64,000 bases of DNA from positions 265,823-329,822 of the forward strand of contig NW_004797602.1 of the NCBI RefSeq assembly GCF_000002075.1, read 5' to 3'. Positions 7,270 through 45,900 of this stretch are shown one piece after another. The notes beneath the pieces are model-generated. The model was given only the letters and a program-made list of their open reading frames with translations, had not been told where the DNA came from and did not search any database. Each line of letters begins with the position of its first letter. The stretch's first letter is position 1. Position numbers and translations under genes: made by a program. Source of the DNA: Aplysia californica (Eukaryota).

Positions 7270-8616
7270 GTAAGTATCAAGTTAACTCCCCATGTATTTT
7301 TGGAACAGCCAGGGTGTGAATTTCATTTTGTTTTACTTCAGATAAGTGATCTCTCTGAGCCTCCTGTGGGTCTGAAATCTAGATTACTACCTGATCTCTA
7401 AACTACTGACACTGTACTGTTGTTGGACCAGGAATGTGTACCACAGACTGAATTGGGGGAAGCCCAAGACTCATGTTCTTGTCTTTTTAGAATAAAAAAT
7501 GCATCTATATATCTAGATCTAGATTCTAGATTTCTCACTTCTTGAGTGATTACACAACTGATATATTTGAACTGAATGAATGGTAACCGGTCATTTTGTC
7601 ACACGTTCATCACGTCATCACGTAGCATGGTATAGATCTAGATCTAGATCTAGATTATTAGATCTACCTACTGAGTATCACTGATTATCATGGTAGCGTC
7701 AATTGCCACCGAGTGACGCGGTGGCAGTTGACAAAATTGACTTTTTGTCAATTGCCACCGAGTGAAGCGGCGTCAAGTCTGAAAACAACACTATCTTTAG
7801 CTTTATACATAATGTGTGTCTAATGGGTCAATTTGTTCTCAACTAATTTCATTGGAAGAGCATCTATTCTAGAGCTACGGTACCATCTTGGAGTGTTTTC
7901 AGTGAGACGTAGGCCTAGATCTAGGCTAGCCTTAGCCTACACATTGGTGGTGTAGAACCAACACAGGCAATTCTAGAAGTAGAAGGTCACAAACGCGCAC
8001 AAACTGAAGCAGAAATTCACGTTATATCGGGGAACAAAATCGGNNNNNNNNNNNNNNNNNNNNNNNNNNNNNNNNNNNNNNNNNNNNNNNNNNNNNNNNN
8101 NNNNNNNNNNNNNNNNNNNNNNNNNNNNNNNNNNNNNNNNNNNNNNNNNNNNNNNNNNNNNNNNNNNNNNNNNNNNNNNNNNNNNNNNNNNNNNNNNNNN
8201 NNNNNNNNNNNNNNNNNNNNNNNNNNNNNNNNNNNNNNNNNNNNNNNNNNNNNNNNNNNNNNNNNNNNNNNNNNNNNNNNNCCGAGCACTCGAGCATAAT
8301 AAGCTAGATCTACCCACCAACGCAAAAGAGCTCCAATTTACTCGGTGGCAATTGACAAAAAAGTCAATTTTTGTCAATTGCCACCGCGTCACTCGGTGGC
8401 AATTGACACTACCGATTATCATCGCATATCACTAAATATATCACCACACATCGCTTAGTCTCACAGCATACCGCTAAATATCACAGCTCATCACTAATAA
8501 ATATCACTGCATATCACCAATTATCTGGTGTGTGTGTGTGTCTGTCTGTCTCTTGACTCACTCTTTCTCTCTGTGTCTACACTGTGTGTGTTTCCCTCTG
8601 TCCCTGTCTCTCTCTG

Positions 8617-8676
<60 letters not shown>

Positions 8677-20600: not shown

Positions 20601-23600
20601 TTGGTTTTTGGGAATAGCATTATTTTTTATGTCCATCAAATGACCATTTGTGTGTGTAAGTGTGAGACAGAGAAAGGGAGTTAATGAATGCCTTTGTGTG
20701 TAAGTATTTGCCATGCTGCAGCGAGTTTCTCTTTGTGGACATCAACAAATTTTCATATTTTGTCTTTTCCATACAATATGATTTTGCATTCCTTGATGCA
20801 TTAAGATATTGACTGCTCTGGGTAAGACTCTGTTATACGTCAGATATGGAAAGTTGTGCGATTTCACTGTGTACCCAGTACATTAATAGGGCATTGAAGG
20901 GCCTGCATACCCCCCGGGGCAGTACCACTGACTGAAGTGTCTTTAGGCCATTCCCAAAGGGGGGACATACATCGTTCAAGCATAGTAGAATTGTAAATGG
21001 GCTGACTCATGTCACACTCATAACTGTGCCTGATCTACAACAGGGAACTGCTGCTTTTTCTTTCCTGATCCTTACTATTTTCATTTACCTCTACTTCTTT
21101 TGTATGTTTGTCACTCCCTTGTGACCTGCTATTTTGGGGTGCCTTGATAGTCGAAGCAGACCTTGTGCTGTTGAAGCTAGAGAGGTGAGCAGTCTAGTCT
21201 GATTCCCGGTAAAAACTTCTCTGTTGACACCCACCCCTTGGCACTCATATGACCTTATGCAGTTGCGAGCGCCGTAAAACTCTCTACTATAAAAAGAAAA
21301 GAAGGGCCTGCACCTCCAAAATAATCTGAATCACATTAGTGTATGTGTGTGAGAGGGAGGGAGGGAGGGAGGGTGGTGGTGGGAGCTCTGGTGTGATTTG
21401 TTCCTTCTGTTGTATCAAACATCACTCACCCTTTTCTCTTCCTTCTTTTGTAGGTATGTTACTCTCTAGTTCACCTCTAATCATTGGCACTTAACTAAAT
21501 TTGTTTCCTCTTTCACACTGTGCGTAGGAGCAACAAGAGAAAGCCCCAGGGGATGAACATCAAGCTGAGCGGCAGCCACGAGGTTCTGTTCCGACGCAGG
21601 CTGTCCACGGACGGCTCGGAGACGGGCAGCCGAGGGCCCTCAGGTCACACCTCCCCTGTCATCTCCTCCCCGATCCGATCCCCTCCTTACAAGCATGACC
21701 CGAGTGCTGGCCAGATTGACGATCACTCCAAGTATTCCAGTAAGCATGCACTGGGACAGTTTGAACCTTCTTCCTCGCTATTCTTGTTTTTATCTTTTTT
21801 GTTTTGTTTTGAAAAAGTGAAAAAAAACAACTAATCAAAAATGTTTATTTGGGTTTTTTTTTTGGTCCTGAAGACATGTTGCCCTTTTGAATGGGGTCCT
21901 TTTTACTCTGTCTGTGAGCACAGGGGCATGTAAGCAAATAATGAAAATGGATAGAGAAAAATAAAAACGGAGAAGGGAAAGAACAGGGGGACAGCAGTGA
22001 ACACATTGTGAGGGAAAGAGTGTGTGTATGGGAGGAAGAGGGAATATTGGAGGAAAAGAGTGGATACTTAAGGGAATGCATGAGCAGTGCTTCCACTCTT
22101 CCGTATTTTTACGCAAATCCGTACTTTCTGCCAGTTCCGTACTTGCTCTTCCATCATTATCAACTCCCTCCTGAAAAATCTGCGACAGTGTTGGACTTTC
22201 GAAATTCCATAGCAAAAGATCCGTACTCGCCTTCGTATCGTCTTGTATAAGTTACAGATATTTACGGTAATTTTCTCGGCAATAAGTTAATGTTATAGAA
22301 ACCTGCCGGCAGTACATTTTTTACCTGCAGATTGATCAAAATCTAGCGAACTTTTGTATCACTTTCCTCCTTTCTATCGTTCCCTCATTCCGTCTGTCTA
22401 TCTTCGGCAGATTGTTGCCGCGGCTGGAAAATCTGCCTGTGGATCAAGTATATTGACTTGTGATCTTAGACAAAAAATTAATGTCAGAAAGAAACTTTTT
22501 TGCAAATTTATTGTCTAGATCTAGAGAAATTATCAGAGCAAAGATTCTACGGCGTGGGAACATGATAAGGGCCGCGATGAAAGAAATTTGTGCTACTAAA
22601 ATCAAGAATAATTTGAAGTGGTGTTCCGAGGTTGTGACATGAGACATTCAGACGTGGAAATTGAGGAAAATTAGGGTATAAGCTGGGTAACAGTATTGTG
22701 AAGGTACATATCTATTCATTATTCCAAGGTTTGCCTTCTATCAATGGTGCGATGACAAATTAATTGAATTACAGTAGCAATGGAAGGGGAACCTGCTTTT
22801 AAACATTGCCAGTAGTGGAAAGATATGTAGGTGAAGAAATCAAACGAGACAAAATCTCGTTAAAAAAAATTGGTAGTATGGGTTGTTGGCAATCTGTTCA
22901 AACAGGCTCCCAAATGCCATTTTGAACCCTCTAAAAGTACTACATTTCAATTTCTTCGGGGGCTTCGCCCCCCGAACCCCCAACGGGACGCTGTCCCTGG
23001 ACCCTGCTGGGGGCCTGTGCAGACCCCAGGCAGAATTTTTCTTACTTTTCAACTTCAGCTGGTGGAAGCACTGATGAGGGAAGGAGTGGAGATATCTTCT
23101 CAAAGGGTGTGGAAGGAAATTTTCTCTTGCTTCCAGCCAGCTCGTTTGCAAGAATTAACCCTTAGAGCGCTGACTTCTTTCCCCTTATATTTTCCCTCTG
23201 TGCTGAATTTATTTTGGAAAAACGCCAGATTTGCACATACGCTTTTTTTTTTGCTAATAACTTTTTTATTTGTCAAAATTTCTAATGAAGGTAAGAATAA
23301 AAGTTTTAGAATATTGAAAGTTCTTTATGAATATGTGAAGCAAAAAGTATTTTGTGAAGTTATTGTTTTAGTAATGACTGAATAAAAACTGCCGGTTCAT
23401 TAGATCTCTAGATCTAGACCAGAGTCTAGATGCTTCGTAAGCCAACGTTATATACCACAAAGTGTTAGCTCTAGCATCAAAACCCTCGAAATCATCTTCC
23501 GATTCAAGGAAAATACGCGGAACATCTTCATCTGAATCTCGACACTATTTTCATGTTTGTCGCGGGTCGCAATCGCGAATTTTCCAACGTCACTGTCACT

Positions 23601-26600
23601 CAACTTCAAAGTGAAACAAAAAACTCCTCGCAACTCGATCGATACCCGTGACAAGAAAAATGGCGGGCGAAATCAATTCTGCGTAGCCTACTAGCCAGCA
23701 GTATAAAAATTAGTTTTTCGTTCTTTTTGTATATCGTGTTATACTATGCCAATGTCTGTCGCGATCAGCACTCTACGGAAGTTCGGGCAGTCGCGACCGG
23801 TGGTCGCGATCAGCACTCTAAGGGTTAAAAGGTTGTTTGCTGGAGCTTCTCAAGAGTTTAAAGATTGCTTTCAATGTGAGGAAGTGTTCACGCTTTTCAA
23901 GACAATCGAGGAATCATGAACACATTGCTGTCCACTGATAGCTTCGCGAATGGGAAAATGATACGGTCGTAGATGAAGGTCTGCCTTGAGAATGCGGACC
24001 GTTGAGATGTAGGAAAGTCATTGCTGCAGACGTCGACTACGGACAGACGTATCATGGGGCTCATCTACTGAATTCTGCACCCTGGTGACATTTAAAGGGG
24101 TGCGAACAGTGTGTGTTTGACCTGAAGTAGTCGTTTTGTCTGAGAATTTGTAGTTCTGATTCTCTACAGGTCCTAACTGATGGACCATTTCCACCCTTGA
24201 CATCAAAGAAGGCCTTCAGGTCACTTTAACATTATTTCGTACCTTGGGTGAAAGTTATGAAATGAGTTCAATACAAAAAAGCTCTCTACTCTTTACTAAT
24301 CTTAACCATGATCTCAGCAGGCCAAGGAAACTTGAGAAAAGTTATCTGCAAACTTCTGTTGGCCTGTTAGACAACTGTATTTTGCAATATGACGCAATTG
24401 TTGGGAATTTTAGTGGTAGGCCTATCAGGTTTTTTTTTTTAATGCACTATGTAGAGAAAAACTATTCTGTGGATTTATCTAAAATGAATATCTGACAAAC
24501 TCCTTTTGACTTCCAAATGTTGTGTACACATTTGAAGCGCAAAACTTTTGCGCTCATATGACCTTATGCAGTTATGAGCGCCGTAATACTTCTACTAATA
24601 GTATAGTAGAAACGCAAAACTTCACTGTGGAGGAAAGTATTAACTTTTTTTGGGTCATTCTGTACTTTGATAACAATATTGGTGCTTAAAGATAGTTGGA
24701 ACTTCTAGATATTATTCTAAAAGGCAAATCTCATTTCCTAGAAGGAGACTAGTGCTTTTTTTTCAGATGAAAATGATTGTGAGTGGCAGAGTGATGGACA
24801 ATATCAGAGTCTTTGGATCAAATTGTGATACATAATAAGCTTATTTTGAGGTACCTACAGTGATGTTGAGATCAAGCGCAGTTTGGGCCATGGAATCTTA
24901 TTTTGTTAGGCAAATGGCATTGTTCGTTTCAAGATAAAAGTAGGCTTCTTTGTTTTATATGAAAGTGATATATTCAAACTTTTTTTATCGCTTGCTCACA
25001 TACCCTGCTTTATTGTTTTTGTTCTAACTTGTGCAAAATTAAAAATATCCCACTAAAAAAAAATCTTTATCATCACATCTGTAAGATAGGTGCATACTGC
25101 TTTAAGATTGCCTGTCAAATGCAAAAGGCCATTGTCAACTAAAAGAGAGTTAAAACTTAATAAATTGAGGCAGTATATACAATTAAAAAAAAATTGTTAT
25201 AGACTGCTTTTTTGTGGGTACAAAAGTTGTTTTTCTCTGGGTACAAAAGTTGAAAAGTAATTTGATTTTAGTAAGCAGTTGAAAAGAGAATAAATTTGAA
25301 AACTATGGTAAAGAAGTGCTTGTAGGATAACCGAAGAGAGGACTGGTGACATGTTTTTTTCCTATGTGTGTGTGTGTGTGTGTGTGTGACCTGTATTCTT
25401 TTTTTTTTCTTTTAGTGTTGCTTTCCTTGAAAAATTTGTGGATTCAATTTGCTTTGCACATAGCATAGTTCACTCTCTCACAACAATTTGATGTTAACTC
25501 CTGCTGAGCTGAGTGTTGATTGAAGATATTTGTTGAAGTAAATGCTTTTCTCATAACAGTTCCTTGTTGACTTTGACTCTAATAATGTTCAAGTGTGATT
25601 TATTTTACATGACTGAACAGCCGGACATTAACAGTCAACAACTGCTTTCACTAACTGCTTTTGACAACCCTTAAAAAAGGCACTGTAGAGAAAGATTTTT
25701 TTCATGGAGAGTAAAGTTTGTTGTTTGTCTACTTCAGTTTTTTGAGTCATCAAAAAAATAGTCTTATAGCAATGGTATAACATACTTTGTCGTTTCTGTC
25801 TTTCTTACTCCCCCCCCCCCCCCAGCAATTTAGTGTGTGTCATTGGGCTTCTCTTTACTCAAAACTCTCGTACACACTCACACACACTCAGTGAGAGGTT
25901 GGCGGGTGCTCTGGTGTGGTTTGTTCCTTCTTTCCTATCAAACATCAATCGTCCTTCTCTCCCCTTCTTTTTTTAATGTTTGTTACTCTCTTGTAGCACC
26001 TCTAATATTCTGGTGCTCATATGACCTTATGCTGTTGCGAGCTCCGTAAAACCTCTACTAAAACTAAAACTAAACACACTCTCAAAGAAACGTTTTTTTA
26101 ATATAGGATATAAACTAAACACACTCTCAAAGAAACGTTTTTTTAATATAGGATATAAACTAAACACACTCTCAAAGAAACGTTTTTTTAATATAGGATA
26201 TTCGCGTATGAGGATCAAATTGTCATTTTACCTTGTTTTTGACCAAGATTATTATTGACGCAAAATCTTGTGGCAGCAGTGTTCCAGATTATTTGAGGAA
26301 CTTTTTTGGGCCTGTGGCAGTTCATATCCCTTCTCGGAGACTACTCAATGTCAGAGGATATAACGTTTGGTCTGTAGTGCTTGTGGATGACGCAGGGTTT
26401 TTTTGGTTCTTTTCCTTAACACTCTTTCAAGTTTGCTGTTTCTTTTCTGAAGACGAATCTTTTTTTTTTCTTCTTGGCATGCCTTATTTTTCTTGTCAAG
26501 CTCCTCATGCTTTGATGCTTGCCAAATTTACACACTGCAGCCTTTTTTTGTAAGCCATTGAAATTTTGGTTTTAAAATTTGATCACTTAAGGTAAATAAC

Positions 26601-29600
26601 ATTTATTATGAGCTGCTTATTGCATTGGCTAAACACCAAAGTTCTTATAGTCTTTTAACAACTGGAAGTTCAGAATTAAGGAAAAATGGACCTCAGGAAA
26701 GTTAATGGGTGATATATCATTTCTATGTTTGTTTCCATTTGTTTACCTTTGATTTTACTTCCCCTGAAGAGGACTAATGGTAGTGTGCCACTGTTTTCTT
26801 GGTATTGCTCTAGAAAGTTGTGCTGCAAATCGTTCATGGAGTTGATAGTCTAGTGATTTGGCTATGGGTTTTGTAATCGTGAGATTATGAGTGTGGTGGT
26901 TTGAGGCTCAGCTCTGTCGAACCTTGTGTCCTTGGGAAAGGCATTTACACTAATTTTCCCAACTGGCTTTATCCTTTTGAAGATAGATGCTAAACTTGAA
27001 GGTCCTGCCTCTTTAAAGCCGCACAATTTTGCAAGGTCTGGGCTTTAATCCTATACAATTTCATTATTTTTTTTTCTTCACGAATTGTTCTTCTCGAGAA
27101 GCCCGTGTCATTTAAGTTTTTGTGTGTGTTTGTCTTGTGTTGTGAACCTCTCTTGCACTCTTTTGAGATGAGTTTTAAAAGGCATGCATTTTCTCTTGAT
27201 TCCAATTGTGTATTTTGTTGAGATTTTGTCACTTTTCAAATGACTTGTCGTGACAGAAATCTTTCTACTTTTGCAGATACACTTACAGTTCCCAAATCTC
27301 CAAAGACACCCCTAAAACTCCACCATCAGATATATCATAGGTAAGATATTTTTCTCACTTTGTCCTGTAATGTTCTGTTACTGGTTTATATTTTGTGTAC
27401 CATATATTTTTAAAAAGCGTATTATGAAAAAAAAGTTTGATGCTTGTGAACAGTGTTTGATCAAGTTAGACTCAACTGAGGTAAAATGAAACCCATGTCC
27501 AAGTTTTTCTGATGTGCTTTACTAGCCAAGAGGCAAAGAGAATAGCGGCCTTTGCTGGATTTCCATAGATGGAGTTTTAGTCAAGTCTTTCCTCTTTAGT
27601 CTCTCCGACCAGCATCTGTGGTTTTGCGGCAGTGGATTCACTGTTGCAGGCTGAAGAACATGAGTTCGAGTCCCATGTGGGATGTTATATATCTCTTAGC
27701 CCTTGTTGGCTCTGAATGGCAGGGTCGAAGAAGCTGGCCTCCTAAATGATCAGAATAGTGTTGGTAGGGGATGTAAAACACCTACAAACACATTATATAT
27801 TGTCTTTTAGTTCAGATTTTAAGGTTCATGATTACTAGTAGTGAACTTTGGGATTTGGATGGGAAGCCACAGAAATAAAATAAAAGTTCACCATTCCCCA
27901 GCTGACAGATTTATACTTAATCATCACCTTACATAGTATATCACTGGCAATATGCAGATAAGAATTAGGGTGAGGAGGTTAGGGTTATTTTGGAGTGTGT
28001 GAGAGGGACTAGTGGGCAGTATCTTGAGATATAGGGGAAAATAAGAGAAAAAAGGTATTGCTAGGTTTTTCTTTCAGCCGGCGAATTTAGCTGTGATGAG
28101 AAGGGTTGGGGCATTGGTCATTATGATGAGGAAGGTGTTGCTCAGATTTTTGCAGGTGACAAATTTGATTTCAGATTGGCTCTGTAAAGAACATATTTAA
28201 ATTTGTCATTAGTTAAATATAATTGCCAACCCTTACATAAAAACGTTTAATACCTTTTTGAGGGTCTGAGTATGGGAGTCTTGTTTTCATATTGGAAAAT
28301 ACATATTCTCTCTTTCAAGAAATGCTTTTCACAGACTTGCAGATGCTGAAGAAAAATTCTGAACTTTCAGGACTGGATTTGCAAATAATAATGACTAAAT
28401 AGCACACAAGTCAAATGGAGGTCTTTTCCTGCAGGTCTTTTTTGAACAGCTTGAATTTATTGAATTCAGAAAAGTGAGCGAAGGCTTTGGAGATGGGTTT
28501 ACATGGCTAGTGACCACCATCTTGATCCATCACTTGGGTAGAAATTTTTTAGTTTTTGAAAAGTTAGCAGCTATAGTTATGAATATGATCAGTTCTGTGG
28601 TATCAGGCTCGTGTTGCCTCACATCTTACTGCAGTCTGGGATTTCCCTGAGCTCACTATTTGTCCCCAGCCGCCCTCACATGGGGATTCCCTGTGTGAAG
28701 TGATGCTTTCAATAAACAAATAGGTGCATTGTATCCCAGTGTTTATCCTTAAAGAAATAATGGGGGTGGGGGAACAGAACTCTTAATAAGATCAAACACT
28801 CAGATCAGACCTTTTTTAGTGCTTATTCAAATATAGGTTAATTTGCTTGAATTGCTTGAACGATTGCAAGGCGATCATACATGACGGACAGATATTAAAT
28901 GAGCAAATTATGGTAAATTGTAGGTTAAAAGAAACTATTGAATATAGTGCTGCTTCTGATGACATTCATGCAAGTGAAATAGGAATGGTTCTCATTCAGA
29001 TGATAGTGACGGAATGAAAATTAGATCTATGTATTGATTCCAAGGCCAAGGGGATTTCTATTTCACTTTCACTGAAAACTGAGCGCTGTAAAAGTGCACT
29101 CATCAGTATTTTCTAACCAAATGACATTTGCACTTTGTAATGATTTTATAATGTGTCCAAACTCATTCACACTATATATGATGGCATGCTTGACGGATAA
29201 AGATTGATTCGCGCCACCTCCTTTCCATTCTTACAATAAATCAAGTTGCTTTTGCGCTTGACACCACGGCGACCCACACATGGCCCCACACAGCTAGTGG
29301 AGATCGCAGTGTGTGTAGTAGGTCAAGCTGGTTCTGAATGAAGGGCTCATGTAGACATATACTGCTTGAAGATGTATAGTGTAATAATTTCATGTAGTGC
29401 AGCTCTTGTACAGTTTTTATAGACGTGGTTTTTGAAAGACATGACATTTTCAGACTTGTAGTTTACAATATGGGTACAGTTCAGAGATAATGTACCAGTT
29501 GAAGAAATTTTTGTAGAAGAAGATTTTTTAAAAAGAAAGAACTTATCCATGCTTGTAGCAGGCTACAAATTATTGCAAGAAGAGTCACTTAGATGCAACT

Positions 29601-32009
29601 TTTGCCATATGTTATTTTGTCTTCAGCTATTTCATCTAGTCCTGCTTGAAAAATATTCTCGTTAAGCCTGCATCAAAATTGCAGGAATAATAGTGATTTG
29701 GGTTCTGTTAGGTCTGTCCCCAGTGGTTGCACGCTGGCAGCATTATGACCCTTTTTTCTTTATGATTATCGTGATAGTAATTGTTTGTTTACGATGACCA
29801 AATGATAAGCACTGGGTGTTTCTCTCTACTTCAAGAAGTGCTGGGTTTCAATGCTGTTGTGACATTCTAATAACAATTTTTAAGACAGATTTGTCAACAG
29901 TTTTTTTGTAGGGGCTTCTTCTGTTATGTCTTGTGTACTCGGGGAAACTATCCCGAGAGACGAAATAGAATTCTTTCTTGACAATTCAAATCAAAACAAA
30001 ACAAAAAAATGGTTCACATGTATGTCTTCTTCTTCACCTTTTAAAATAATACTAGGCTGATTGTTTTGAAGGCTTGGAAACGCAATTTAAAAGTATACAT
30101 TTATTTTTAGTTGTTCAATAATAATTTTGCATTGTACAGAGTTTAAAACCTTCAAGGGATTAGGCGCTGTATAAACTCACATTATTATTAAAGATGTTAT
30201 AATTAAAGCAAAAAAAAATCTTTTACACATGTGTATCATTCTTCTTTTTCACCTTTCTAATTAATGCTGGGCTTGTTGTTTTGAAGGTTTGCAAACACAT
30301 TTAAGATCACCACTTGCGACCACTGTCATAAGCAGATGATTCTGGGCTACAAATGCAAAGATTGCAAGTAAGCCGCTGCAGCAGCGCTGTGCATGTGTGC
30401 AGCAAAACCCGTACTGGCGCTACTGGTCCCTATAGCAACCCCTATGCTTGTGTTACCCACTCTTTAATTGTCATTTCCTGTGTGTGTGTGTGTGTGTATG
30501 TACATACACGTATATATGCATATTGACTGCTCTGTGTAAACCCTGTTATGTGTCATTTTTCAAAAAAAGCATATGGTGGAGTCTTACACTAAGCAANNNN
30601 NNNNNNNNNNNNNNNNNNNNNNNNNNNNNNNNNNNNNNNNNNNNNNNNNNNNNNNNNNNNNNNNNNNNNNNNNNNNNNNNNNNNNNNNNNNNNNNNNNNN
30701 NNNNNNNNNNNNNNNNNNNNNNNNNNNNNNNNNNNNNNNNNNNNNNNNTCCCATAGCAGTATTCACGTATATATCTTAGTAACATTGTTATTATATTCAC
30801 ATATTAACTCTGTGTTTGCATCGCTTTCAGCTTAGTTTGTACTTACCGAACAGTTGCACTAAGCAAAATCAGTTTAGCATGAGTCCTCGATCTCTGTGCA
30901 CTTATATAATAATCGACTTCCTGGCGGGGAATCATTCTGAGCAATGATATGTGAATACAGAGAGAGTACATAGATCTTAACAGAAAATTATTGTGATAGT
31001 AAGAAGGAAAAAAACCCCGTTGCTCAGTGAGTGTAGTGTTGTCTTCTTCTGGTAGGCTGTTGGGTGTTTTTTCATTACCTGGCAGTTGAGTGTGCAAACT
31101 GGAGTATTTTTTAGATTGTCAGTTTCCATTTTCATCGAGTTTGTAAATTCCAAATTCCAAGCTGAATTTTCCCGTTCAATCATTCGATAGCAAATCATGT
31201 AAGTCTGGTATATACGCATCCCAATGTTATAGATAAAGAATTTGAAGAAAAAAAAAGAATCTTTGTATAATTTCATGAAAGTTCGCTTTTTGGGATGCAA
31301 TGTTGAATGTTAAGGGAAATAAATGTATCGGATGGAAAGAGTCTGATGTGTGGGTTTATTTTAAAAATTGGTTTCTTTGAGAAACTGTTTATGACGGGCT
31401 ATGTTTAGGTCCAGGTTAGACTATTATAAACAGTCTTTTTGATGATAGCTTTTGGTATGATGAGTCGAACATGAAACTATGTGTTTCTATTGCTGGTCGG
31501 TGGTTTTGGGTTCTGAAGACTAACCTGCAGGCTGGCTGAGCTTTTGGCACTCATATCCGAATTATTCGATTTTTTCCCTTTTTTTTTTCTCCACTTCCTT
31601 CTTTTTCTAATAAGATGTAACAAGCTGCTTATATTTATGTAGATAATCAGCGTCTATTTATAGTATTACGATGATTTTTTTCGTAATAGAATCTGCTGTA
31701 TGGGAAGAAGCTTTTGAAGAATGGTAAATGTGTAGGTTCACCGTTCTACTTGGGCTGTAAGTCTCCTGTCGTAGGGTAGAGCTGCATGTGTGTTACTGGT
31801 GGTAAGTGGATCTTCATCACCACCATCATCATCATCATCATCATCCTCAATATCATTGTCACTGTTGTCACCATCTGAGCAGTGTGCGTTCCTCCTCCTC
31901 CTCCTTTTCCTCCTCCACTTTTTTCTTTTGGTTAGAGAGCACTCCCTCCTTTGGGGCTCGGCCTCTCTAACCCTCCCTCCACCCCCCTTGTACTCGCTGC
32001 CAGTAGCAC

Positions 32010-32076
<67 letters not shown>

Positions 32077-33931
32077 AACAGTCTCCCCTCCTTCCTCCTC
32101 TTCCTGTTTGATTGTATGCCCATACTCTATTATACGTGCTCTCCTCTCTCTCTCCTTTTGGTACATACACCACCACCTCCTCCCCTCCCCCCATCACCCT
32201 TCACCCACCCACCCCACCCACTGGCCGCTCTAGATGTACCTCGTCCATGTTTGTGCTTGCCCCCTGTGATCTGTGTCAGACCTTCGCCATTCGTGGGAGA
32301 ACGTGTAAAAACTGCAAGTAAGTGACCTGCTCATTTCTCTGTTGGCTGATTGGTTTTTACGGGCAGCCGGAGGATGCCTGCCACTGGTAGGTCCTGCTTC
32401 TGTTCTCTTATCACCTCTGTTGTTTCTGTCTGTCCGTCTCACTTTTTCCCCAGCACTAAATTACTGCGGGTGGGTGGAGGGTGCCAGTGGTAGGACCTAC
32501 CTTCTTTTTATTTCCTTCGCTCTATTTTTTCTCTTTGTCTGTCTGTCTCTATTTTTCCTCATCACAAAATGACTTTCATTTTGGGGGATGTTTCCTTGTA
32601 GCCAACCGTGGTCGTTTTTTCAAAATAGGCCTTTATTTTTCTCTTGGGTGAATCAATAAATGATTGTTTTCCCCCACACAAAATCCCCGTGTCTGTCCTC
32701 AAGGTTTTTTCTTTTCTTGCAGTACAGTCCGTGCCGGCTTTAAGCACGCCGGCCTTAAGCACGTTTCGGACTCAAGCACGCTAAACGGCTCTTACCGAAT
32801 TTTTGCTATATAAATTACACGCCTTTAAGCACGGTAACTTCGGCTTCAAGCACACTTCATTTACAAGACAGTCAATATTTTCATGATGACCCATTGAAGT
32901 TCGAACACAGTTTACACCGCAGCAGTGGAGTGTGTCAAGAGAAACCCAAAGAACGCAAGTGATGGATACACACACTCACACGGGCGGAGAGGAAGGCAGA
33001 GAGATGCACACAGCCGCGCGCGCGCGGACATAGGATCTAGCCTTGGCCTAGGGCAAAGCTACACATGACCAAAAAAAATACTAAGAGAGTCGGGGAGACG
33101 AGAAAGGGAGGCTGGCTGCGATTTCACCTTTGACCCTCGCTGTCCATTAATCCTGATTGTGTATCACGCGCGAGGTGGGATGAAGGCGGTGGTATGAGTG
33201 GCACAGCGGGCAGTGGTGCGCACAGGCAATGTGTTACAGTAGGCCTAGTGTGCTGTATCGTGACTGGCCGTCTAAATTAAGTTTTCATTTCCCATTCGAC
33301 CACAAAACAAAAACAAACAAGCGAACAAAAACTGCCATGGCGGGTGTCTAAATAACAGTGCACACTTTTGCGGGACCGCTATAGGCCTACTTACAAACAA
33401 AGGGAATAGCACGGGGAATTTTCTACATGAAAATCTCTGGATTATATCGACTTCGCACTTAAGCACGCTTCGGCTTTAAGCACGCTTAAGCTTTCTCCCG
33501 ATGACCGTGCTTAAAGCCGGCATGGACTGTACTCATTTCTATTTTTTTTCTGTGGACAGTTTGGTTTTCCCCACATTATGACTGTGTCTTTCTTCTAGGC
33601 CTTTAACTTTCGCTCAAACTTTTCTCTCACTTTTTTCGCTCCTCCCCTTGTTTGTCGTTGATGGAAGTCGAAGAACATGTATCTGCCTTGTTTATAAGCT
33701 GATGGTTAGAGGGCGTTGTGATAGGTCCTACGTTTTTTTTTCTTTCCCTCTGTTGTTGCTGTGTATCTGTCTGTCTGTCTGTCTGTCTGTCTTGCCTTTT
33801 CTCTGCTCTAAATGACGGTTATTGTGTCAATGTGCATCTCTGTACTGTTCCTCTGTGTTCCTGTCCTATTATTTTGGCTCACACAGAATCTCCTCTCTGT
33901 CTCTGTCTCTCTCTGTCTCTGTCTGTCTCTG

Positions 33932-33974
<43 letters not shown>

Positions 33975-36900
33975 CTCTGACTCTCTGACTCTCTTTTGGG
34001 ATATTGAATCACTTCCCATCATGCCCCTGTCTGTCCATCATTTCTAGCATTTTTCCTTCTCTTGAGGCTTCTCCACCGTTCCCGCATTATATTCCACTCC
34101 TTTTTGTCCTCTTCGTTGCTTCTTTTGTAGGGTGTATTGTTTTTCTTTCTTATTTTTTGTTTGCTTGTGGGTCTTTCACAAGCTGTGTTGTATGTTGTTA
34201 AAGCAAACCTCTCGATCATTCTTCATGTTTTTTAGACATATTAATTTTCCTACTTTTAGGTAATTACTTTAGAGTATGTTCACCCGTACGACTTCTGTGC
34301 TTGATTGAAAACACACTTTGACGCCCAGACTCCTGCCAGAAATATGCTATTAACAATATCTCTGCCTCTACATGTAATATTGTGTCTGTCTGGTGTCTCT
34401 ATACAATCAGTTGTGTATCATTAATTTGGCTGAATCGTTGGAGGACATTAATTGTTATGTCTCTGTAGCACTGTTAATGTTGATAAAAAAACTGTTCTAT
34501 TACTAATGGACAAGTAGCAACTTAAAATTACCTATACAGTCAGTGAAGCAAAAATGTGTTTTTTCAGGAGTTTGTAAAGCTCTGTTTGATTCTCTTGTAA
34601 ATCCAAGACTTAGAAATGTCATTTGATTTAGACTGCCAATGGACGACAATAAGTTTTGAAGTAAATGTAATTATAGTTAGGAGTTGATCATTTTTCACTT
34701 CACTATAAAATGATAATATATTTTGAAGTTAATATAGCAAGGAGTTTTTATTATTGTTTTTCCCCCTTTCTAACTTTTCAGAGGTAGGGGATACGTTTGA
34801 ATCAAAGGAATTTCTGTCATCGTAGCTTAGTCCCTGTGGTGTAGATGTAGTAGATTGGTATTTCATGATGTGTAGACACCGATTTCCCTGTGTATGCTGT
34901 AGCTAGTTCTCTGATGGAAATAGAAAAAAAAAATTAACTTATTGAATTTGCATGCCAGTGTGGGCATACTTTTATTTACTACTACATGGATTACTAAACA
35001 AGAACGTCATGTTCTTTGGTGATGCTTCAGTTTTAATTTCAAAGTCTCAGTGACTTTCTATTTTCTATGGAATATTGAAAGAATAGAGGACACTTCTGTT
35101 TCTGTTTTGAAGACTAAATAATTGTATCATATAAGAAATTAAGTAACAGCAAGTGTGTGTAATCATCTAGTAACAGTAACTTGATAAAAGCTTGATGAAG
35201 TCTTATTGGAGAGTTTTTCAAAATAAGAATCGTCTTTTGGGTTCAAGGGTGATAAAAAACTCTTGTTTACTCTGCCTATTATTGCAGTTGCCAGTTGAAT
35301 AAGTGGAGGATTTTTGTCCTTCCTGGTTTTACTTTGAGGGGTTTTTGAAGGTTTTCAAAGAACCTGAATATGTGTTTGAAGTTTTGATTGCTTGGAATAA
35401 ATATCTGAATTATTTAGAGAGTTGGTTTGATTTTTTATTTAAGTTTTATACTGTCTAGTTTAAGCTGTTGAGTACGCCACTTTTGCAGCAAATGTTAATT
35501 TTACCTCTGTGCATTAATAAGGAAGAATATTGTTAGCTTTCTTAGACCATTAGATTCTTTTTTTTTTAACATCTTCACTAAAATATCCAATTTTACTTTT
35601 AATGCAAAGCACGCGAGTGCAATGGAGTTGATCAGTCAGGTAGATTAATTCTTCAAAGAAATGTGAGTAGATCTAGCTTAAAGTTGCTATTTCTTTCCTG
35701 ACCCTGGCAGTTTGTAATCTTATTTCCTTTTTGAATCTAATTTCAGTTACAGTTTAGAATATGGATAAACCATTTTTGCATCCTTTTTTAATAATGTTGT
35801 ATGAAACCTCATAAATAGTAAAATATTTGTTATAAAATTCTTATTTGAATGTTTTATATATATGTTTATATCCATCTTTACAGGTCATAAGAATAATTTT
35901 TAAATATTTTTTTTATTCATTGTAAACAAATTCTGCAATATTTTTTTTATTGAAAAGAAAAACCAGACTGATTGCTTTATTTAGAATTAAGCAAATGGTA
36001 TACACCTGGAACTGAGTAATGCAAGATTATACCACAACCATGTCCAGGGGGCTTGTGAAAGGAATACAAATGTAAAAGTGAATTTCTATGGTAGCACTGT
36101 TTTTAATCTTATAATGCTATTTTTTTGCTTTAGCTTTTGACTTTATTTAGGTTGTTTCATATTTGTTCATGCTATACTATACTATGACATTAGACATTCC
36201 CTTTCTCATTCATTTCCCCTTTTTTGCTGTGACAGGAAAAAATTCCATAAAGACTGTGCCCAACGTGCCCCGCCTACCTGTGGTCTTTCAGATGCTACAG
36301 TCGATGCCCTGCTGGAGTGGAATGGTATGTCCAGCTTCGGTTAACCTGTCGGTCTTTGTGCGAGGCAGGGAGGGGCAGGGCAGGGGTGGAAGGGAGCAAG
36401 ACAATGATGTTTGTTTAAAAAAAAAAAAGAAGAAAAGTCACCAAATAGAAAAATGGCAAAAGAGATAAATGTACCATTTGTTTTTTTTAGTAGGGCTGAG
36501 GTGGAGGTTACTAAGTTATTAGAACAGCGTAGCAAGTTGTGAATTTGTTTTGTACTTAAAAATTTTTTTCTTAAAAAGAGAGATAAATGTATAATAGATA
36601 TTGCACGAATTGGTTAAGTTTTTGTGAAGCAGAAGTGAAATAAAGTGACGAAATGGTTTGTCCTTTAACAAAAGTATAAACAAGGAAGTTATCAGGGCTG
36701 AAAATTGTCCGCCTAAAGGCGGAATTCCACTCATTGCAACACAGCCGTCCGTTCATTCGAATGCCTCTTCCGCCTTTTTTCAGAGTTTTGTATTTTAATA
36801 ATATTGTAGTAAGAATAAAAAGACAATAATAGTTTTAGAAGTTTTTTAACTGCTCACTGGACGAAACGGAGGTGTGTGCGCATTCGTGTGTCGACCGATA

Positions 36901-39900
36901 CCATTCAATCGAGTACTTTTTATTCTTCTTCATTACTGGTAGAATCGCATTCAGTTGTGACAATTGAGTACCGGTTGTTATTTGGAGAACTGTGGCAATG
37001 ATGATGGTCCACTCCTCTCTTTGAGCCAATTAAAAAAGTGTCCTCAAAATTTAGTGGCGCCTTCTTCGCAAATGCGCACCTTTTGCGAACAGTTACCCTA
37101 CTTGTGTGAAAAAAATCAAATGAAACTTAACAATATTTTGAATAAATAAGAATTCAAATTTCGGAAAAACCCTTTTTTTAAATGGTTACGCTGACAAAAA
37201 AGAGGAAGAGGCAACTGTTTTATTTGTTTAATTTTACTTTAGAATGAGAGGAGAGAGGTCATTAAAATTTAAAAAACCTAAAACTCCGCACTGAACGAAC
37301 CCGAACAGCTGATGAACAGCATTCCATCTGTGCATGCAAGGAGGTGCTATTCCTATTCTTCTTCTGGAGAAACGAAAGAGAGCTTCAAAACAAAGACTGC
37401 AGCGCCATCTGAACTATTGCGCGGACTTCCGGCGGACACTTTTTTGGCTGAGTGGACCATCTTGTAATGTATCATCATTGACTGTGGTGACTTTGGCCCA
37501 CGCATTATATAGGTAGCGTAAACACTGCCTCACGGGCACTCGCAGCCTTCCGAGCACGTGATATCGTTGAAATCGGGGTAATTCAGATTGCTGTTTCTTT
37601 ACTCTTTCACTGTAAAAGACCAAATGCCATACACCTTGTAAAAGTTCAGATTTTCCTCGTTACAATGGTGTAAGTTGTTTAAATGTCCGCTTATTAGGAG
37701 CTGGAGAATCGCAGAGGAAAACGAAGCCCCACGCAGTTGGCCGGTTAAAAAATTGACTTGCGTGCATTCAAATGCTTCGCGGAAGGATTGATAATTAAAT
37801 ACTTTCTTTAAACTGGCTTTCCCGTGGTAAATTTTTGGCCTTTGGCTTTTAAATAGAAAGCGTTTAAAAATCCCGTCAAAATTTTCAAAGATCATTTTTT
37901 ACTCGAAATATGTAAAATACAGACTCAAAAAAGGTACCAATAGAAAGATCAGTTCATTTTCTATTAGAATAAAGTAACCATCTTGTAAATATTTTGCATC
38001 GATCATTCCGCGAAACTCGGAAAGCATGTGGCCCCCCCACGTGGGTACCCTACAGTACAGAGCCGACTCGCTCGCTGCTGGGGCCGATGCGGCGCTGCAG
38101 GGTCAACGCTCAGTGTTCTTGTCGAAATAACGACAGATCATTGTGTTTGAGACGATAAAATACTGATTTGTAATGAGCTCACAGTCTTGAACAAAATTAG
38201 GCTCCATACACGTTTTAGTGATTGTACTCTGTTAATGTGGAGATGTTTAGTGCACTTGGTACTCTTTTATTATCTGTCAAACATGGGGTTGCAGCCAGTG
38301 AGTGACTTTAACAAATTTGATCAAATTTTAAACTACTACCATTTGTTGTAAAGCTACTTTGAAAATTTAGTTTCTGGCACCTACGTTATATCACAACCCT
38401 GTAGCCTAAATCATTGAAAAAAAATTTTTGCTCCACAAAATCATTAAAACACTGAAAATGGCCTTTCGTGTGAACCCTGTTAATAATAATTTTTTTTTAT
38501 CTCAAGAATGATGTATTTGTACAAAGTACAATGTATAGTAATGGTTTATGTTCTTTTTGGCAGTATTTAGGTAGTTATTATTTTTCTCTAAAATTAGGGT
38601 AACAAGCCCTAGTTTTCAGCCTTATTTGTGGTATGCCATTCTCAGCCCCGAGTTATAGTGAGTACTATAGTTGTGTTTATGTGGTGTACAATTTTTTTCC
38701 CTATTGCCATGGGAAAATTGATCAGAGCCAATAGAAAGAAGAATCGATTTGATACATAATACTTGTCTCTTTGTTCTCCATTGTGCCATTGCACCTAGGA
38801 AAAAATTATCAGTCTTTGCAAAAATGGTGCTTTTAAACATGTCTTTTTTTTCCTCCCTTTCCTCCACCCCCTTTCACTCTCCCCCCTCTTCCCTCCTCCT
38901 CCTCCCCCTANNNNNNNNNNNNNNNNNNNNNNNNNNNNNNNNNNNNNNNNNNNNNNNNNNNNNNNNNNNNNNNNNNNNNNNNNNNNNNNNNNNNNNNNNN
39001 NNNNNNNNNNNNNNNNNNNNNNNNNNNNNNNNNNNNNNNNNNNNNNNNNNNNNNNNNNNNNNNNNNNNNNNNNNNNNNNNNNNNNNNNNNNNNNNNNNNN
39101 NNNNNNNNNNNNNNNNNNNNNNNNNNNNNNNNNNNNNNNNNNNNNNNNNNNNNNNNNNNNNNNNNNNNNNNNNNNNNNNNNNNNNNNNNNNNNNNNNNNN
39201 NNNNNNNNNNNNNNNNNNNNNNNNNNNNNNNNNNNNNNNNNNNNNNNNNNNNNNNNNNNNNNNNNNNNNNNNNNNNNNNNNNNNNNNNNNNNNNNNNNNN
39301 NNNNNNNNNNNNNNNNNNNNNNNNNNNNNNNNNNNNNNNNNNNNNNNNNNNNNNNNNNNNNNNNNNNNNNNNNNNNNNNNNNNNNNNNNNCTCCACAGAG
39401 TCCCCAATGTCCCAGCGACGCATGACCAAAGGCATCCTGTCCCCCAGCAGCTGGGAGGAGAGCCTCAAGCCCGTCAAGTCCATGCCAGCCTTCCCCGGCG
39501 GCCCGTTGCCCGACTCTGGCTCCAACACCTCCTCCTGCAACTCCTCCTCCCCCTCCTCTCCCGCCTACCACCAGACCTCCTCCGACACAATCACCTCCCC
39601 CTCCCCGGCCCCCTCCCCCTACAGTTCCTCTCGCACACAGTTCAACTTTCCTGGTAAGTTTGTCTGATCATGGTGTTTTGTGATTGAAGGTATGTTGGTG
39701 AATGGCATAAACTCATGAGGTTTTTCATTTGAGGTGGATCATTCTTAAACAGAATAAGCTGATGATGTTTGTCATTTGAGGTATATTTGTAAATGTGAGG
39801 CAGCATGGTGAAATCAGGCGTTTGTCAAAATAATGAAAGTCAAGAAACTGGCATTTTTCCGCAGGTTTGGGAATTTTTATGTAATTTTTATGGGGGGACT

Positions 39901-42900
39901 CATCACCTTTCTTGCCCTTCAAAGAACACATTTCTGTGTGGATTTGCCTGAGAAACGTTAACTAAAGGCATAAAAGATGTACACTTTCAGTTTCCACAGC
40001 CTCTCATGCTAAGGAAATATTTCAACTTTGGCGGCCATTTACTCGCTAATTTTACCTCTGAAACCAGGCGACCCCCATCTCCTTCAATCGCTAAAATCTT
40101 GACTTGCATCCAAGATAAATGGATAATTTTTTTCATCAAAAGCAAGACAAATGGACAGGCTTTAAGATGATACCAATAACTTTATATGCTTCAAAATTGA
40201 CAAGCGCCTGTTTCCACCGCGTCTTGACAAATGGAAAAAGCTGATGATTGATATTTCTCATTCGAGGAACATTTGTAAATGTAAAAAGCTGATGAAATTT
40301 CTCCTTTGAGGCACGTTTGTAAAATGCTGTTTCAGCTTTTAGGTAGTGGGTAAATGGAATAAGTTAATTAAAGGTGTTTCTGATTTGAGGTATCTTTGTA
40401 CATGAAAAAGTTGGTGATGTTTCTGAATTGAGGCATATCCTTATGTGGTATGAAATTAGAATTCCAAAATCACTAAAATGAAATGAAATATGAAATTAGT
40501 CATCGCCTCAGAACTATTTTGTCCAAAGTGTACTTAACCATAGAGTGCACTTTGGACAAAGTAGTTCTGAGGCGACATAGTGTAATTCAAAACAGCAGCA
40601 ATGAAATGTGTGCAGTAATACCGCGGAACTCGGATTCAACAAGAACTCGAATTGAACGAAAGTAGATGGATTCCCCGTCTTTTCTTTTTATTTAAAATCA
40701 ATAAAAATAACTCGGATTCAACGAACGCTTAACTCTATATCTCGGCAGAGGGTAAACCCACTATGCCGGGGCCCTTTTTTGGTGCTAATTCTAAAAATGA
40801 CAAAAACGTCATTAAATGGGTAATTAAATTGAAACAAGCGAACCTAAACCTATTTTCATAATTCTTCATCTAATGAATGAACTTCCGGTATTATGGGACC
40901 TGTTTTCGGCAATTAATTGGATGTCGAAGTCGTCGTAAAGGAATGTGCTAGAGTGGCTCACCGGCACAGTGGTTTTCTGTCCGCGAGCCGCCGGGAGCAG
41001 CTTGCCGGAGATAAATGAGGTCGCTTCCATGGTGAAAAGCCCCCTGCAGACGTGGCTTGGCCCATTTTTTCCCCACAACGAACTTTATTCTTGGAAACCA
41101 TCCTTTGCACCGGCATCGTGAACCATTATTCACCTACCCGATTGCATGCGACCGATCGGCGGCCTTCTTTCATACCGACATGTGTGTTGTTGGCATGCAC
41201 ACGTGTCTACATGTACTCTAGCATTTGTCGGGGTCGAATGGGGGGCCTGCACATGTGTGACTCTGTGTGCGTGTCGCGCGGGGGGGGGGGGGGGGGGGGG
41301 GGGACCAGCGGTCCAGGTGTGGAACGTCGCAGATACCAACACGTCACAGTTCTCCCTCCCCCCAGCAACTGATCATTAATACAGTGATAAGCTAGTTTTG
41401 ACATAGATCTACATAATGAATTGTGCACTGGTCTATGGAATCAAAAGTTGCCGTATGCTAGGCTCTATATAGCAACACAACTTTTTGGCAAACAGTCGAG
41501 ATGACACAGGCGTGCATTTGAACAATTTTTTTGTTTGTTGCACAGCTCATAATATGCGGGCTTTTCAGACACCACTTGTTACTTCTCTTTATACATTACT
41601 TGCTCAGTGCCTGTAATTATCCTTACAAAACCTCATGTTTGCTATAATGGAGACTTGGATTCAATGAGATTTTAGGCCCGGCCCGGCAGCCTCATTGAAT
41701 CGTAGTTCCACTGTATGAAAATTATATAGTTGTAGTTATTACTAGCGCTTATTTACTGTTTATATAGTACTCATTTTGTCTTGAGAAATTAGGTTGTGTA
41801 TTTTGTGAAATGAAATAGATTTATTATTTCGGGCTTATTGCTGTTATTTTGTACTCATTTCAACTTCAAGAAATGCCATTACATACATAGTGAAATGTGT
41901 GTAGGGTTGGTTGTAGGGACTGAGACGGGTGGTGAAGGGATGGACAGGCTGAGAGTCAGATGTGCTCTCATTCACTCTGTCATTTGATCATTTGTCATAT
42001 ATGTGTGGGAGTAGTGTTTTATGGATTTTACTTTTCATGTGATTTATCTTGTCTCTCCATTCCTTGATCATACGCGCATGTGCATGTGCACACGCACATG
42101 TGGGGAGTGTTTCATGGTGTATTTCTCCATCATTTTGATAAATGCTTATGTTGTGTAAGTGAGAAGCTTTTGATGGATTTCACCTTTCACTGTGTGGTGT
42201 CTCCACAGATGTTGCCTCAACGCTCCCAGCAGATTTTGGTGGGGGCACGACAGGGACTGATTCCCCTGACACGTGAGTGGTTTGTTTGTGCACTGTTTAT
42301 TAGTAATAAACTGACTTGTTGCAGGCTTGCCAGCTCTGCCTTAAGCTAACAAAGGGCCTTTTTTCTTTCTCTGCAGTTTCGAGATAAAGGTTTTTTTTGT
42401 CAGCGTAACGTTTGAAAACAGCATTCTTCCAAAATTTGAGTTCTAATTTATTCAGAAACTAGTCACAGTTTTGCTTTGATTTTTTATCACAAGTAGGGTA
42501 ACTGATCAGGCTTTCGATTTAGCAAATAAAAAAATTTGGTGCCAAAATGAAAAAAAGGTGATTTGTCAGCTTACGGCAGAGCTGTACTATGTTTCCCAGG
42601 AATGTCCCGGATTTGGCAGCTGGGAATTTTAGAGCCTTGTCACTTACTCTATCTCAAGACCAGTCCCACTGGGTGTAATTTACAGGTGGTTGGCGGTTGC
42701 TCTGGTCTGATTTGCTCTTTCTTTCCTATCAAACATCTTTTGTCTTTATCTCTCCTTCTTTTTTTGTGTTTGTCACTCTCCTATAACACCTCTAAGCTTC
42801 AGCTCTTATATGACCTTATTGTTTTGCAAGTCTTGGAAAACGCTTACTAGAACAAGGATTTAATTTGGTTAATTATTATGTAATCTGCTATAAAGCTGGG

Positions 42901-45900
42901 TGTCCCTGGTTGAGTTTTGAAAAAATTGGCAAACCTGTTGTCTCAGCTGGTGACCTTTGCTCCTTGTGGATGCTGCACTTTATGCATGGGTGGCTAGAGG
43001 ATGCCGCTGGAAAGTTTTGAGAATTTTCAGGGTTTCCAGCAAGGTCGTAAAGTTGTAGAAAAGTCCTAAATTCAGTGGCCTGGTCGTAAATGGTAGTAAA
43101 TGTGCCATGAAGGTTGTAATTTTATAAACCGTCGTAAATAAACATGTGTACAGAGTGATGAAGCCTGCAAGACTTTTCAGTTAAAGGAGTCATGGCTGCG
43201 GTACTTGGCGATTACCAAATCCCATTTTTGTCAATATAGTATTAGTATCGCGGAACTCGAATATTTTGAAAACCAAGTCCGATAAGGTCAGTAAGTTCCT
43301 TTTTGCCAGTCGCGATTGTGTAATAATATTATATCAAGGCTGCCTAATTCTACCGATTTTTCCGGTAGATACCGATTTTGGGCCTGTTCTACCGCCATAC
43401 CGGTAAGGTGTCAATACTACCGGATTTGCAATGGGTGCGGAAAAAAGAAAAAGAAAAAAAACCCATTCTGCTGTGCTTCCATTCTTCTTTGTTTTTGCGT
43501 AAATCCGTACGTTCCAAAAGTTCCGTACTTACCGCATCATCATATCAACTCTATTTGTTATAGAGAGAGTCAAAGAGATCAGCACTAGCTTTGTAACTTG
43601 TCAGATATTTACGGCAACTTTCGGCAATAAGTTGTACATGTATAAGAAACTGCCAGATTGCGCATTTCATACACTCAATCATTGTCTGTCTGTGCCGTTC
43701 GGTCGGCAATAGTTTTTCACGTGCATATTGGCTAAAATATGTCTACTCACGATATATAATCTTCCTCCTTCTTTTCATTTTTTCTTTCTCTCTGCCTACC
43801 TTCGGGTTTTTGCTATGGCAGGAAAATCTGTGCATTTAATTCATTTATCTAGAGAACAGAATTGTGAATGTAGAAAGAAAATCGGTATCGAAGCAAAACA
43901 TTCTAAAATCTGTCTTGGTCTAGAGAATTGGTCACAGTACCGAATGAGGATTCTACGCAAGGGGACTGCGGGAATTATTTCCTGGGAATCTGAAAAAAAA
44001 ATGGTTGAGACCCGAGAAAATGCGCAAAGTCCTCGAAATCAAGTCTATTTTACCGGTCACATTTGTGATATGACTTTCGGCTTTCCCCAGTCCGAGAGTA
44101 CGTTTCACAGGAATAAGCGGCTATGGCGGCAGGTGGAAGTGTAGGTGTAATACTGAGACTCCATCGGGAAAATAAAAATCTACTTTCGCTTTCGTTATCG
44201 CTCAGAATTGTCTGATGATGGTTTGTTAACGTTAGATTTACAGCTAATGAAAATTTGTAACGTGCAGTTTGTGCATAAAAAAACACAGTGACGTCATACA
44301 AATTAAATCGATATTCTCACTTTTGTCACTATATTGACAAAAAAAAAGGAAGAAAAAGAAAACAAGCGTACTCCGTTTTCTAGATTGTCGGGCCCGTCAT
44401 TGTGACCGGTCAGTGAACCTGTGAGAGTTCGTTTGTCACACTCTTGTGGCCCACTATTTCCGGGGTGCCTTGATAGCCGAAGCAGACTTTGAGCCGTTGA
44501 AGCTAGAGAGGTGAGCAGAGTAAGTCGGATTCCCTGTAAGAACTTCTCTGTTGACATCCACCCCTTGGCGCTCATATGACCTTATGCAGTTACGAGCGCC
44601 GTAAAACCTGTACTAAAAAAAAAAAGTTGTTGCTCTTGTCTCGTTCCTAAGGGTGGTCCGAGGGGGCGACTGGTAGGTCCTACTTCTTTTCTTTCTTTCT
44701 GTTGTTCCTGTCATTCCATCTGTCTTGCTGTTTTCCTTACAGTGAATGGCCGTTATTGTATTTATGTTCTTCTCTTTACTCTTAACTTTTTGTGTTGCAA
44801 ATGCTGTAAAACTCTTAACTAAAACTAAAACTGAAGTAGCCAGGCGATACAAATAAAGCAAATTCATTGTCAAACAAATTTTCCTAATTAATTTATCCTG
44901 ATTGAAATGAATACTCCTGTTGAATAAATCTGCCTCTTTGTCTCTTTGTTACAGCGATGTTGTGAGTACCGATGCATCCAACGACAGTGATAAAACGTTA
45001 ATTGATGTAAGTATAACAGAATTCTTAGAAATAATGGGGTGTGCAAAAAGTTGGGTTTTTTGTTGTCGTTGTGGTTGAATGTCGCCTGTTTGTTACTCAC
45101 ATTTACCCAATAGACCCAAGCACACACTTAAGTGTGACTACCTTTACCCGACTGTGCACAGTATGCGTACCTTAGTTTACAGAGGTGTAATCTTGTGGTT
45201 AATGTACAGGGGCTAGGTGCAAGGGTCCCTTAGGCTGAGGGGGGGGGGGGGGGAGGGTTAAAGAGTAAGCTATTCATTTTGTAATTTCTACGGTGTATAA
45301 TGGTTGATATGATAGTGCAGAATTTCACTCTCAGGTGTTTTGGGGTTTTGGCCTCTTTTTTAATTAAGGTAAAGAGGGTGGACGTAAAATAAAATATCCT
45401 ATAAATTCCTGTGACGGTCAACACAATAAGTGTTGTATATCAATGGAAAGGACTTTTGATTTGATACAATAATTATTTGTGTATGATTTTTCATTTGCAT
45501 ATGTGACTTACTTACTTGGTATCTAAAAATAGTTTAAAAAAAAAAGACTTTTCTGTTCTCATCTTTTCATAGGCAAAGAATGAAAAAACTTTGTTTTGAA
45601 CGAAATTGATTCCATTTCTAGTTTATATCAAGGAGCATTCAATTCTGCACAATATATTAAAAATTAGAGTAATTTCAGGCCAATTACTGGAGATGGCAGC
45701 CATTTAGTACCATGACCTAGTTGTTCAAATTTGAAATGCAAACGAATAGTCTGATTGCACGAAAAATTATTATAAATTTGTTAAGGCTCCTATGACTGCG
45801 GTACTTTACATAAAAGTAAGGCATTTTGGGTAGGTATTGATTTTAGACCCAAATCAGAGATTTGCCTCTACTAATTTTCATATTTGACCTATTTTGAGAT

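Follow-up and report, generated by a model that had tools for sequence, protein, structure and literature searches.

A probable one-of-two switch between alternative C1 half-exons in the KSR gene of Aplysia californica

On the evidence of its domain matches, the plus strand of a 64,000-nucleotide (nt) stretch of Aplysia californica DNA (contig NW_004797602.1, positions 265,823-329,822, forward strand; hereafter the window, whose own numbering is used throughout) encodes KSR, a scaffold protein of the Ras-ERK pathway. Two exons of this gene, 7a and 7b, are very probably a conserved mutually exclusive pair, the product of a tandem duplication of the exon that codes for the N-terminal half of its atypical C1 (CA3) zinc finger. 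Under this interpretation, an ancestral KSR C1 half-exon would have been duplicated in tandem to give 7a and 7b, and each mRNA would carry exon 6, then either 7a or 7b, and then exon 8. Both products would retain the full zinc-ligand pattern, and their two exposed loops would differ.

The finger is spread over exon 6, one of the two alternatives and exon 8, all on the plus strand. Exon 6 (27277..27340) ends with the first zinc-ligand His and the “ag” of an Arg codon; its 3' boundary reads ...cat ag|gtaag, and RNA contigs terminate or branch exactly at 27340, extending upstream into exon 5. Exon 7a (30287..30367; 81 nt) provides the canonical KSR-type N-terminal half of the finger, exon 7b (32234..32317; 84 nt) a divergent alternative to that half, and exon 8 (36236..36324) the shared C-terminal half, with the ligands x4-H-x2-C-x7-C. 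The splice sites are gaag| (acceptor) and |gtaagc (donor) for 7a, and ctag| and |gtaagt for 7b, so that AG acceptors, GTAAG donors and phase are common to both. Whichever exon follows, its first base finishes the Arg codon that exon 6 leaves split (agg with 7a, aga with 7b), and both exons end in “aa,” a codon start that the beginning of exon 8 completes to Lys. Adjacent, homologous, in the same phase and of nearly equal length, the two have the arrangement of a tandem duplication.

Each of the two exons encodes the part of the atypical C1 that runs from just past its first His up to its fourth Cys, and each keeps CxxC-x9-CxxC together with a Gly three residues ahead of the third Cys. The Raf/KSR class of atypical C1 was recognized by the pattern H-x(10-12)-C-x2-C-x9-C-x2-C-x4-H-x2-C-x7-C, in which a short x9 loop replaces x13-14; read over exon 6, 7a or 7b, and exon 8, the window gives H-x10 (7a) or x11 (7b)-C-x2-C-x9-C-x2-C-x4-H-x2-C-x7-C. 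A six-frame pattern scan of the window found CxxC-x9-CxxC nowhere beyond 7a and 7b. The Pfam C1_1 profile was matched by 7a over positions 7-35 (E 5.7e-4, 20.1 bits) and by exon 8 over positions 37-52 (15 bits). A sequence-only reading that preceded this analysis had given the end and phase of exon 6, the coordinates, lengths, phases and GTAAG donors of 7a and 7b, and the Cys and Gly pattern shared by the latter two, and the sequence agrees with it on each of these. Its exon 8 stood as to the start (36236) and the ligand-bearing half, but not as to the end, which it had placed at 36327; the exon likely ends at 36324, where a G|GTATGT donor is the one mark of the boundary.

Words from 7b were present in 20 listed public sequencing runs from at least five studies, and the contig totals of the 7b-bearing runs (~30-140 Mb, versus a genome of 927 Mb) are transcriptome-like. 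Contigs of four public runs from four studies (X2, X5, X9, and X12) were aligned to positions 27200-32400; exon 8 lies outside this region and is hence visible only as loose contig ends. A GT..AG joint from exon 6 to 7b (27340>32234) was found in all four runs, and the corresponding joint to 7a (27340>30287) in two of them (X9 and X12). Contigs read past 30367 into exon 8 in X2, X9, and X12, and past 32317 into exon 8 in X5, X9, and X12; beyond both positions the loose ends carry one and the same sequence, that of the first 24-30 bases of exon 8. X9 and X12 each yielded two short contigs, 136 and 139 nt long, in which the last bases of exon 6 lead through 7a or 7b into the first bases of exon 8; the members of each pair differ by 7a versus 7b only and have similar depths (6.5 and 7.8 in X9; 8.3 and 14.8 in X12). 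A choice between two alternatives takes this shape in a de Bruijn graph. The two forms therefore co-occur within single runs, and in X5 the 7b path alone was assembled. The contigs of the four runs contained no joint from 7a to 7b (30367>32234) and no read-on from exon 6 into exon 8 with both exons skipped. What was assembled across the four studies was the path 6>7a>8 and the path 6>7b>8, each with exactly one of the two exons. The expectation of one-of-two use raised by the sequence-only reading was thereby supported at the level of assembled contigs, in which the single-exon junctions that it had proposed to count were present. Record 14 of X9, a 3052-nt minus-strand contig, touches 22 nt of intron 6 (27729-27750) joined to 32379; this “joint” is non-canonical (CA..CC), and the contig most likely stems from a repeat or from some unrelated transcript rather than from KSR splicing.

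KSR contigs of other species were located by a search with the large Pro/Ser-rich exon. The C1 comparison comprises the window and two related species represented by European Nucleotide Archive assemblies (L037 and L038); the Logan contigs L039-L043 end before C1, and the Mytilus coruscus locus (L044) falls short of the C1 exons. In both related species, 7a (81 nt) precedes 7b (84 nt) as it does in the window, and each exon is bounded by an AG acceptor and a GTAAG donor. The 7a-7b intron measures about 1866 nt in the window and 4128 and 3036 nt in the relatives, and when the window is compared with either relative, the exons alone align while the introns give no alignment. Nucleotide identity to the relatives is 88-92% for 7a and 76-79% for 7b, the latter within the range of constitutive KSR exons (68-80%). 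The ratio of nonsynonymous to synonymous substitution rates (dN/dS; Nei-Gojobori method, three species) is 0.02-0.06 for 7a and 0.10-0.13 for 7b, with synonymous divergence from the window near saturation; 7b is the faster evolving of the two. Because its dN/dS is about 0.1, its splice sites are intact and the flanking introns are unalignable, 7b is a coding exon under purifying selection, and both copies have been preserved in both relatives while their introns diverged past alignment. An old, selected exon duplication had been proposed from the window, with conservation of 7b in relatives and its dN/dS named as the check; the retention of 7b in two species at such a ratio, with intact splice sites, supports that proposal.

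Several points weigh against mutually exclusive exons. The RNA evidence consists of assembled contigs, which drop rare variants and whose depths are unreliable, and the runs were labelled as RNA by guess, although the GT..AG joints nevertheless indicate spliced RNA. On its own, 7b has no Pfam C1 match. A protein-library search with 7b (31 amino acids) gave 0 matches, an uninformative outcome given that the query is short and that isoforms are merged in 50% identity clusters, and a word-index search with the 7b open frame gave no candidate within a length window that leaves out full-length KSR. Finally, exclusivity is not explained by frame, intron size or spliceosome type, as detailed below. 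The missing Pfam score would suit 7b being a neutral pseudo-exon, a product of splicing noise beside 7a as the sole meaningful form, and so would a 7b protein that evolves about five times faster than that of 7a and three larger runs of the same organism that lack any of the sampled 7b words. This very unlikely alternative is largely refuted by the correct joining of 7b to exons 6 and 8 across four studies, by X5, where 7b is the sole form, by 7b contig depths at or above those of 7a in X9 and X12, and by the conservation of length, phase, splice sites and all four Cys at a dN/dS of about 0.1 between introns that cannot be aligned.

It is also improbable that 7a and 7b are independent cassette exons, with forms containing both or neither likewise made, in frame. 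Lengths of 81 and 84 nt, both multiples of three, and open junction codons mean that frame and nonsense-mediated decay (NMD) permit such forms, and the loss of rare variants from contigs could hide them; yet the four runs yielded single-exon paths and neither a 7a>7b joint nor a read-on from exon 6 to exon 8. The protein products argue in the same direction: with both exons the finger would gain four further Cys, and with neither it would lose four zinc ligands. An assembly gap (30597..30748) between 7a and 7b invites the further thought that the pair is an assembly artefact, either two haplotypes or a misjoin across the run of Ns. The gap lies within the 7a-7b intron and outside both exons, beginning 230 nt past the 7a donor and preceding 7b by 1.5 kb. 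Protein identity of about 43% shows that the two are not alleles, both are expressed within the same runs, and two independent assemblies of other species repeat their order, the intervening introns being 3.0 and 4.1 kb long. Because the spliced RNA contigs and the two gapless related loci show one and the same order, the order of 7a and 7b does not depend on the gap, and an artefact, to which we attach next to no probability, was rejected on these grounds. Since the relatives' 7a-7b introns contain no third copy, the gap is also unlikely to conceal one.

Mutually exclusive use of 7a and 7b calls for some means of exclusion, and three of the familiar ones do not account for it. With 81 and 84 nt being multiples of three and every junction codon reading through, double inclusion or double skipping stays in frame, and therefore neither frame nor NMD enforces exclusivity. 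Steric hindrance finds no support in a 7a-7b intron of 1.9 kb in the window and of 3.0 and 4.1 kb in the relatives, nor does U2/U12 incompatibility in four introns that are all GT-AG, with GTAAG or GTATG donors and no U12-type donor. Scans for docking/selector RNA pairing returned many duplexes of -26 to -31 kcal/mol, none standing out above background. Two intron blocks are conserved between L037 and L038, without a counterpart in the window, and their pairing is no better than that of shuffled sequences in L037 and reaches z ~ -2.4 in L038. The first block (L037:15845-15992 / L038:14252-14439) lies 110-330 nt downstream of 7a, and the second (L037:19694-19856 / L038:16977-17148) covers the entire AG-free zone ahead of 7b. 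Partial complementarity, of weak significance, exists between the end of the former and the beginning of the latter.

That AG-free zone has an equivalent in the window, where a tract of 150 nt immediately before 7b (32082..32233, plus strand) is free of AG and 79% pyrimidine, its AG spacing falling in the top 0.3% for the window. The zone measures 151 nt in L037 and 160 nt in L038, and the window tract is unalignable with theirs. At 7a, all three species have a weak acceptor, AAG|G. AG-free zones usually signal that the branch point is distant, and regulated exons commonly have them. The tract before 7b probably hosts such a distant branch point or a regulatory tract, and the choice between the exons would be set by regulated splicing around 7b that makes use of this long tract and of a remote branch point. 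We infer from this that exon choice is a regulated splice-site competition.

The C1/CRD of Raf-family proteins reads the membrane and restrains the kinase, and in KSR it is required for membrane recruitment of the scaffold. The segment swapped between 7a and 7b holds both exposed C1 loops, namely the residues leading up to the first Cys and the x9 segment that separates the two CxxC pairs. Across the three species, 7a varies at 1 of its 27 positions, and the segments SMFVLAP and TFAIRG of 7b are invariant. Over the six residues that precede the first Cys, the Kyte-Doolittle values add up to 12.9 in 7b versus 1.3 in 7a, with equal net charge. CA3 contributes to KSR membrane localization via phospholipids (PMC5583734), and a shallow putative lipid pocket in KSR1 CA3 has been described that comprises L342, V345, M353, I354, and F355 (PMC10932182). 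In a hand-extended alignment of 7a with the KSR1 structure 1kbe, all five of these positions fall in the swapped exon, and 7a and 7b have different residues at four of them. It is reasonable to infer from these sequences that the two isoforms differ in membrane, lipid or partner specificity. The isoforms would give the KSR scaffold different affinities for membrane, lipid or partner, the 7b form through its invariant and far more hydrophobic first loop.

As to the origin of the pair, 7a and 7b share about 43% of their residues and are mutual best matches among the sampled C1 exons of this genome. Their alignment score with one another is 56, compared with 49 (7a) and 46 (7b) against the C1 of the genome's own Raf and 40 or less against the other sampled C1 exons. 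A search of the Aplysia genome with 7b returned itself only, with no further copy. The degree of divergence, the mutual best score and the single genomic 7b fit an old tandem duplication within KSR. The possibility that 7b was copied from the genome's Raf C1 was rejected, as its score of 46 to that domain is below its score of 56 to 7a. Among solved structures in the PDB, the best match of 7a was the KSR1 C1 domain (1kbe, E 0.007), and that of 7b was the RAF1 CRD (E 0.008), with KSR1 absent from the 7b matches up to E 10. The apparent closeness of 7a to KSR1 and of 7b to the RAF1 CRD is a lead only, at E values near 0.01 over about 28 residues.

More distant lophotrochozoans show different arrangements of the same region. 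Between its N-terminal exons and exon 8, the cephalopod Argonauta hians has just one such exon, of 81 nt. In the annelid Capitella teleta (KB300180.1), there are two tandem C1 half-exons (L045:7887-7955 and L045:8159-8239), 203 nt apart. The downstream copy is canonical, at 81 nt; the upstream one is a candidate exon of about 69 nt that keeps CxxC-x9-CxxC and the phase, is unannotated, and lies between two gene models. This upstream copy is unlike 7b in position and length, and scores over about 27 residues do not settle how the Capitella copies are related by orthology to 7a and 7b. Exon 6 of Capitella seems to require a GC donor (cacag|gcatcg). From these sequences, the KSR C1 half-exon would have been duplicated either anciently, with later remodelling, or more than once. 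A bolder version is possible, though doubtful: that the duplication took place very early, before the annelid-mollusc split, or repeatedly, that lophotrochozoans thereby splice their single KSR into two membrane- or partner-targeting modes, and that the more hydrophobic, RAF1-CRD-like loop of 7b might steer KSR to a different lipid environment or contact.

The remainder of the gene accords with its assignment to KSR. Its approximate visible span, from stop-free segments and Pfam matches, is 7063..61026 on the plus strand, over which CC-SAM, Pro/Ser-rich, C1, putative CA4, and kinase classes of exon are found. The CC-SAM (CA1) region is identified by a match to PF20406 (SAM_KSR1_N) of 34.5 bits against a cut-off of 23.1, with a weak match to PF13543 (SAM_KSR1; 17.7 bits) also present among the window segments. 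One exon alone identifies the kinase-like domain (Pkinase, 38.9 bits; PK_Tyr_Ser-Thr, 38.5 bits), additional kinase exons are discernible among the stop-free segments of the window, and a Ser-rich exon lies near 48.8 kb. Ras-binding domain matches in the Aplysia genome fall on contigs other than that of KSR.

Some further observations concern the gene and its surroundings. A second assembly gap (38911-39390) directly precedes a Pro-rich open frame (39426-39680) that aligns with L038 at 74.7% identity. This frame probably belongs to the next KSR exon, whose 5' end may fall inside the gap. The intron between 7b and exon 8 contains a 28-nt inverted repeat (32721-32748 / 33506-33533; 96% complementary, arms 757 nt apart) that resembles the termini of a small transposable element. 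In Mytilus coruscus, Capitella teleta, and Argonauta hians (L044, L045, and L046), KSR is annotated as two genes, one for the CC-SAM part and one for the C1 and kinase part, and in the same three species a Rad17/RFC-like AAA gene adjoins KSR, which suggests conserved microsynteny. Elsewhere in the Aplysia genome, contigs L019-L025, L028, and L029 carry repeated long open frames (up to ~1500 amino acids) with a Cys-rich motif that weakly matches the C1 profile; this family, with nine or more nearly identical copies, probably represents a zinc finger carried by a transposon.

The origin of mutually exclusive exons by tandem duplication is well known. The literature (open-access papers and preprints) yielded no description, for any KSR, of a switch between C1 exons, so that the KSR C1 half-exon switch is apparently a new instance of this device. 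One likeness is to FGFR2 IIIb/IIIc, mutually exclusive exons that swap half a domain and whose specificity has been shown experimentally. There, too, a tandem-duplicated exon supplies half of a small domain, and the alternatives change the binding surface on an unaltered shared half; the FGFR2 case involves another protein and domain, and the specificity of the KSR pair is a prediction. Alternative splicing of a KSR gene to give functionally distinct scaffolds has a likeness in B-KSR1, a brain-specific splice isoform of mouse KSR1, which is not known to involve the C1 finger or a choice between duplicated exons. The C1/CA3 domains of vertebrate KSR1 and KSR2 (1kbe and 1kbf) have the same zinc-ligand pattern and short x9 loop; vertebrates vary the KSR C1 by means of two paralogous genes, whereas Aplysia does so by alternative exons within one gene. 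The RAF1 CRD (1faq; also in RAS-RBD-CRD complexes, e.g., 6xgu) belongs to the same atypical C1 class as the 7b product, but 7b is spliced into KSR.

For the study of splicing, 7a and 7b add a clean one-of-two case that is unexplained by frame, intron size or spliceosome type yet comes with a conserved AG-free tract of 150-160 nt. For the Raf/KSR family, they present two loop versions on one shared zinc-finger core, both under selection. ERK signalling in Aplysia neurons has been intensively studied, and the two forms are a ready-made isoform pair for asking what the KSR C1 loops recognize and how placement of the scaffold shapes ERK output.

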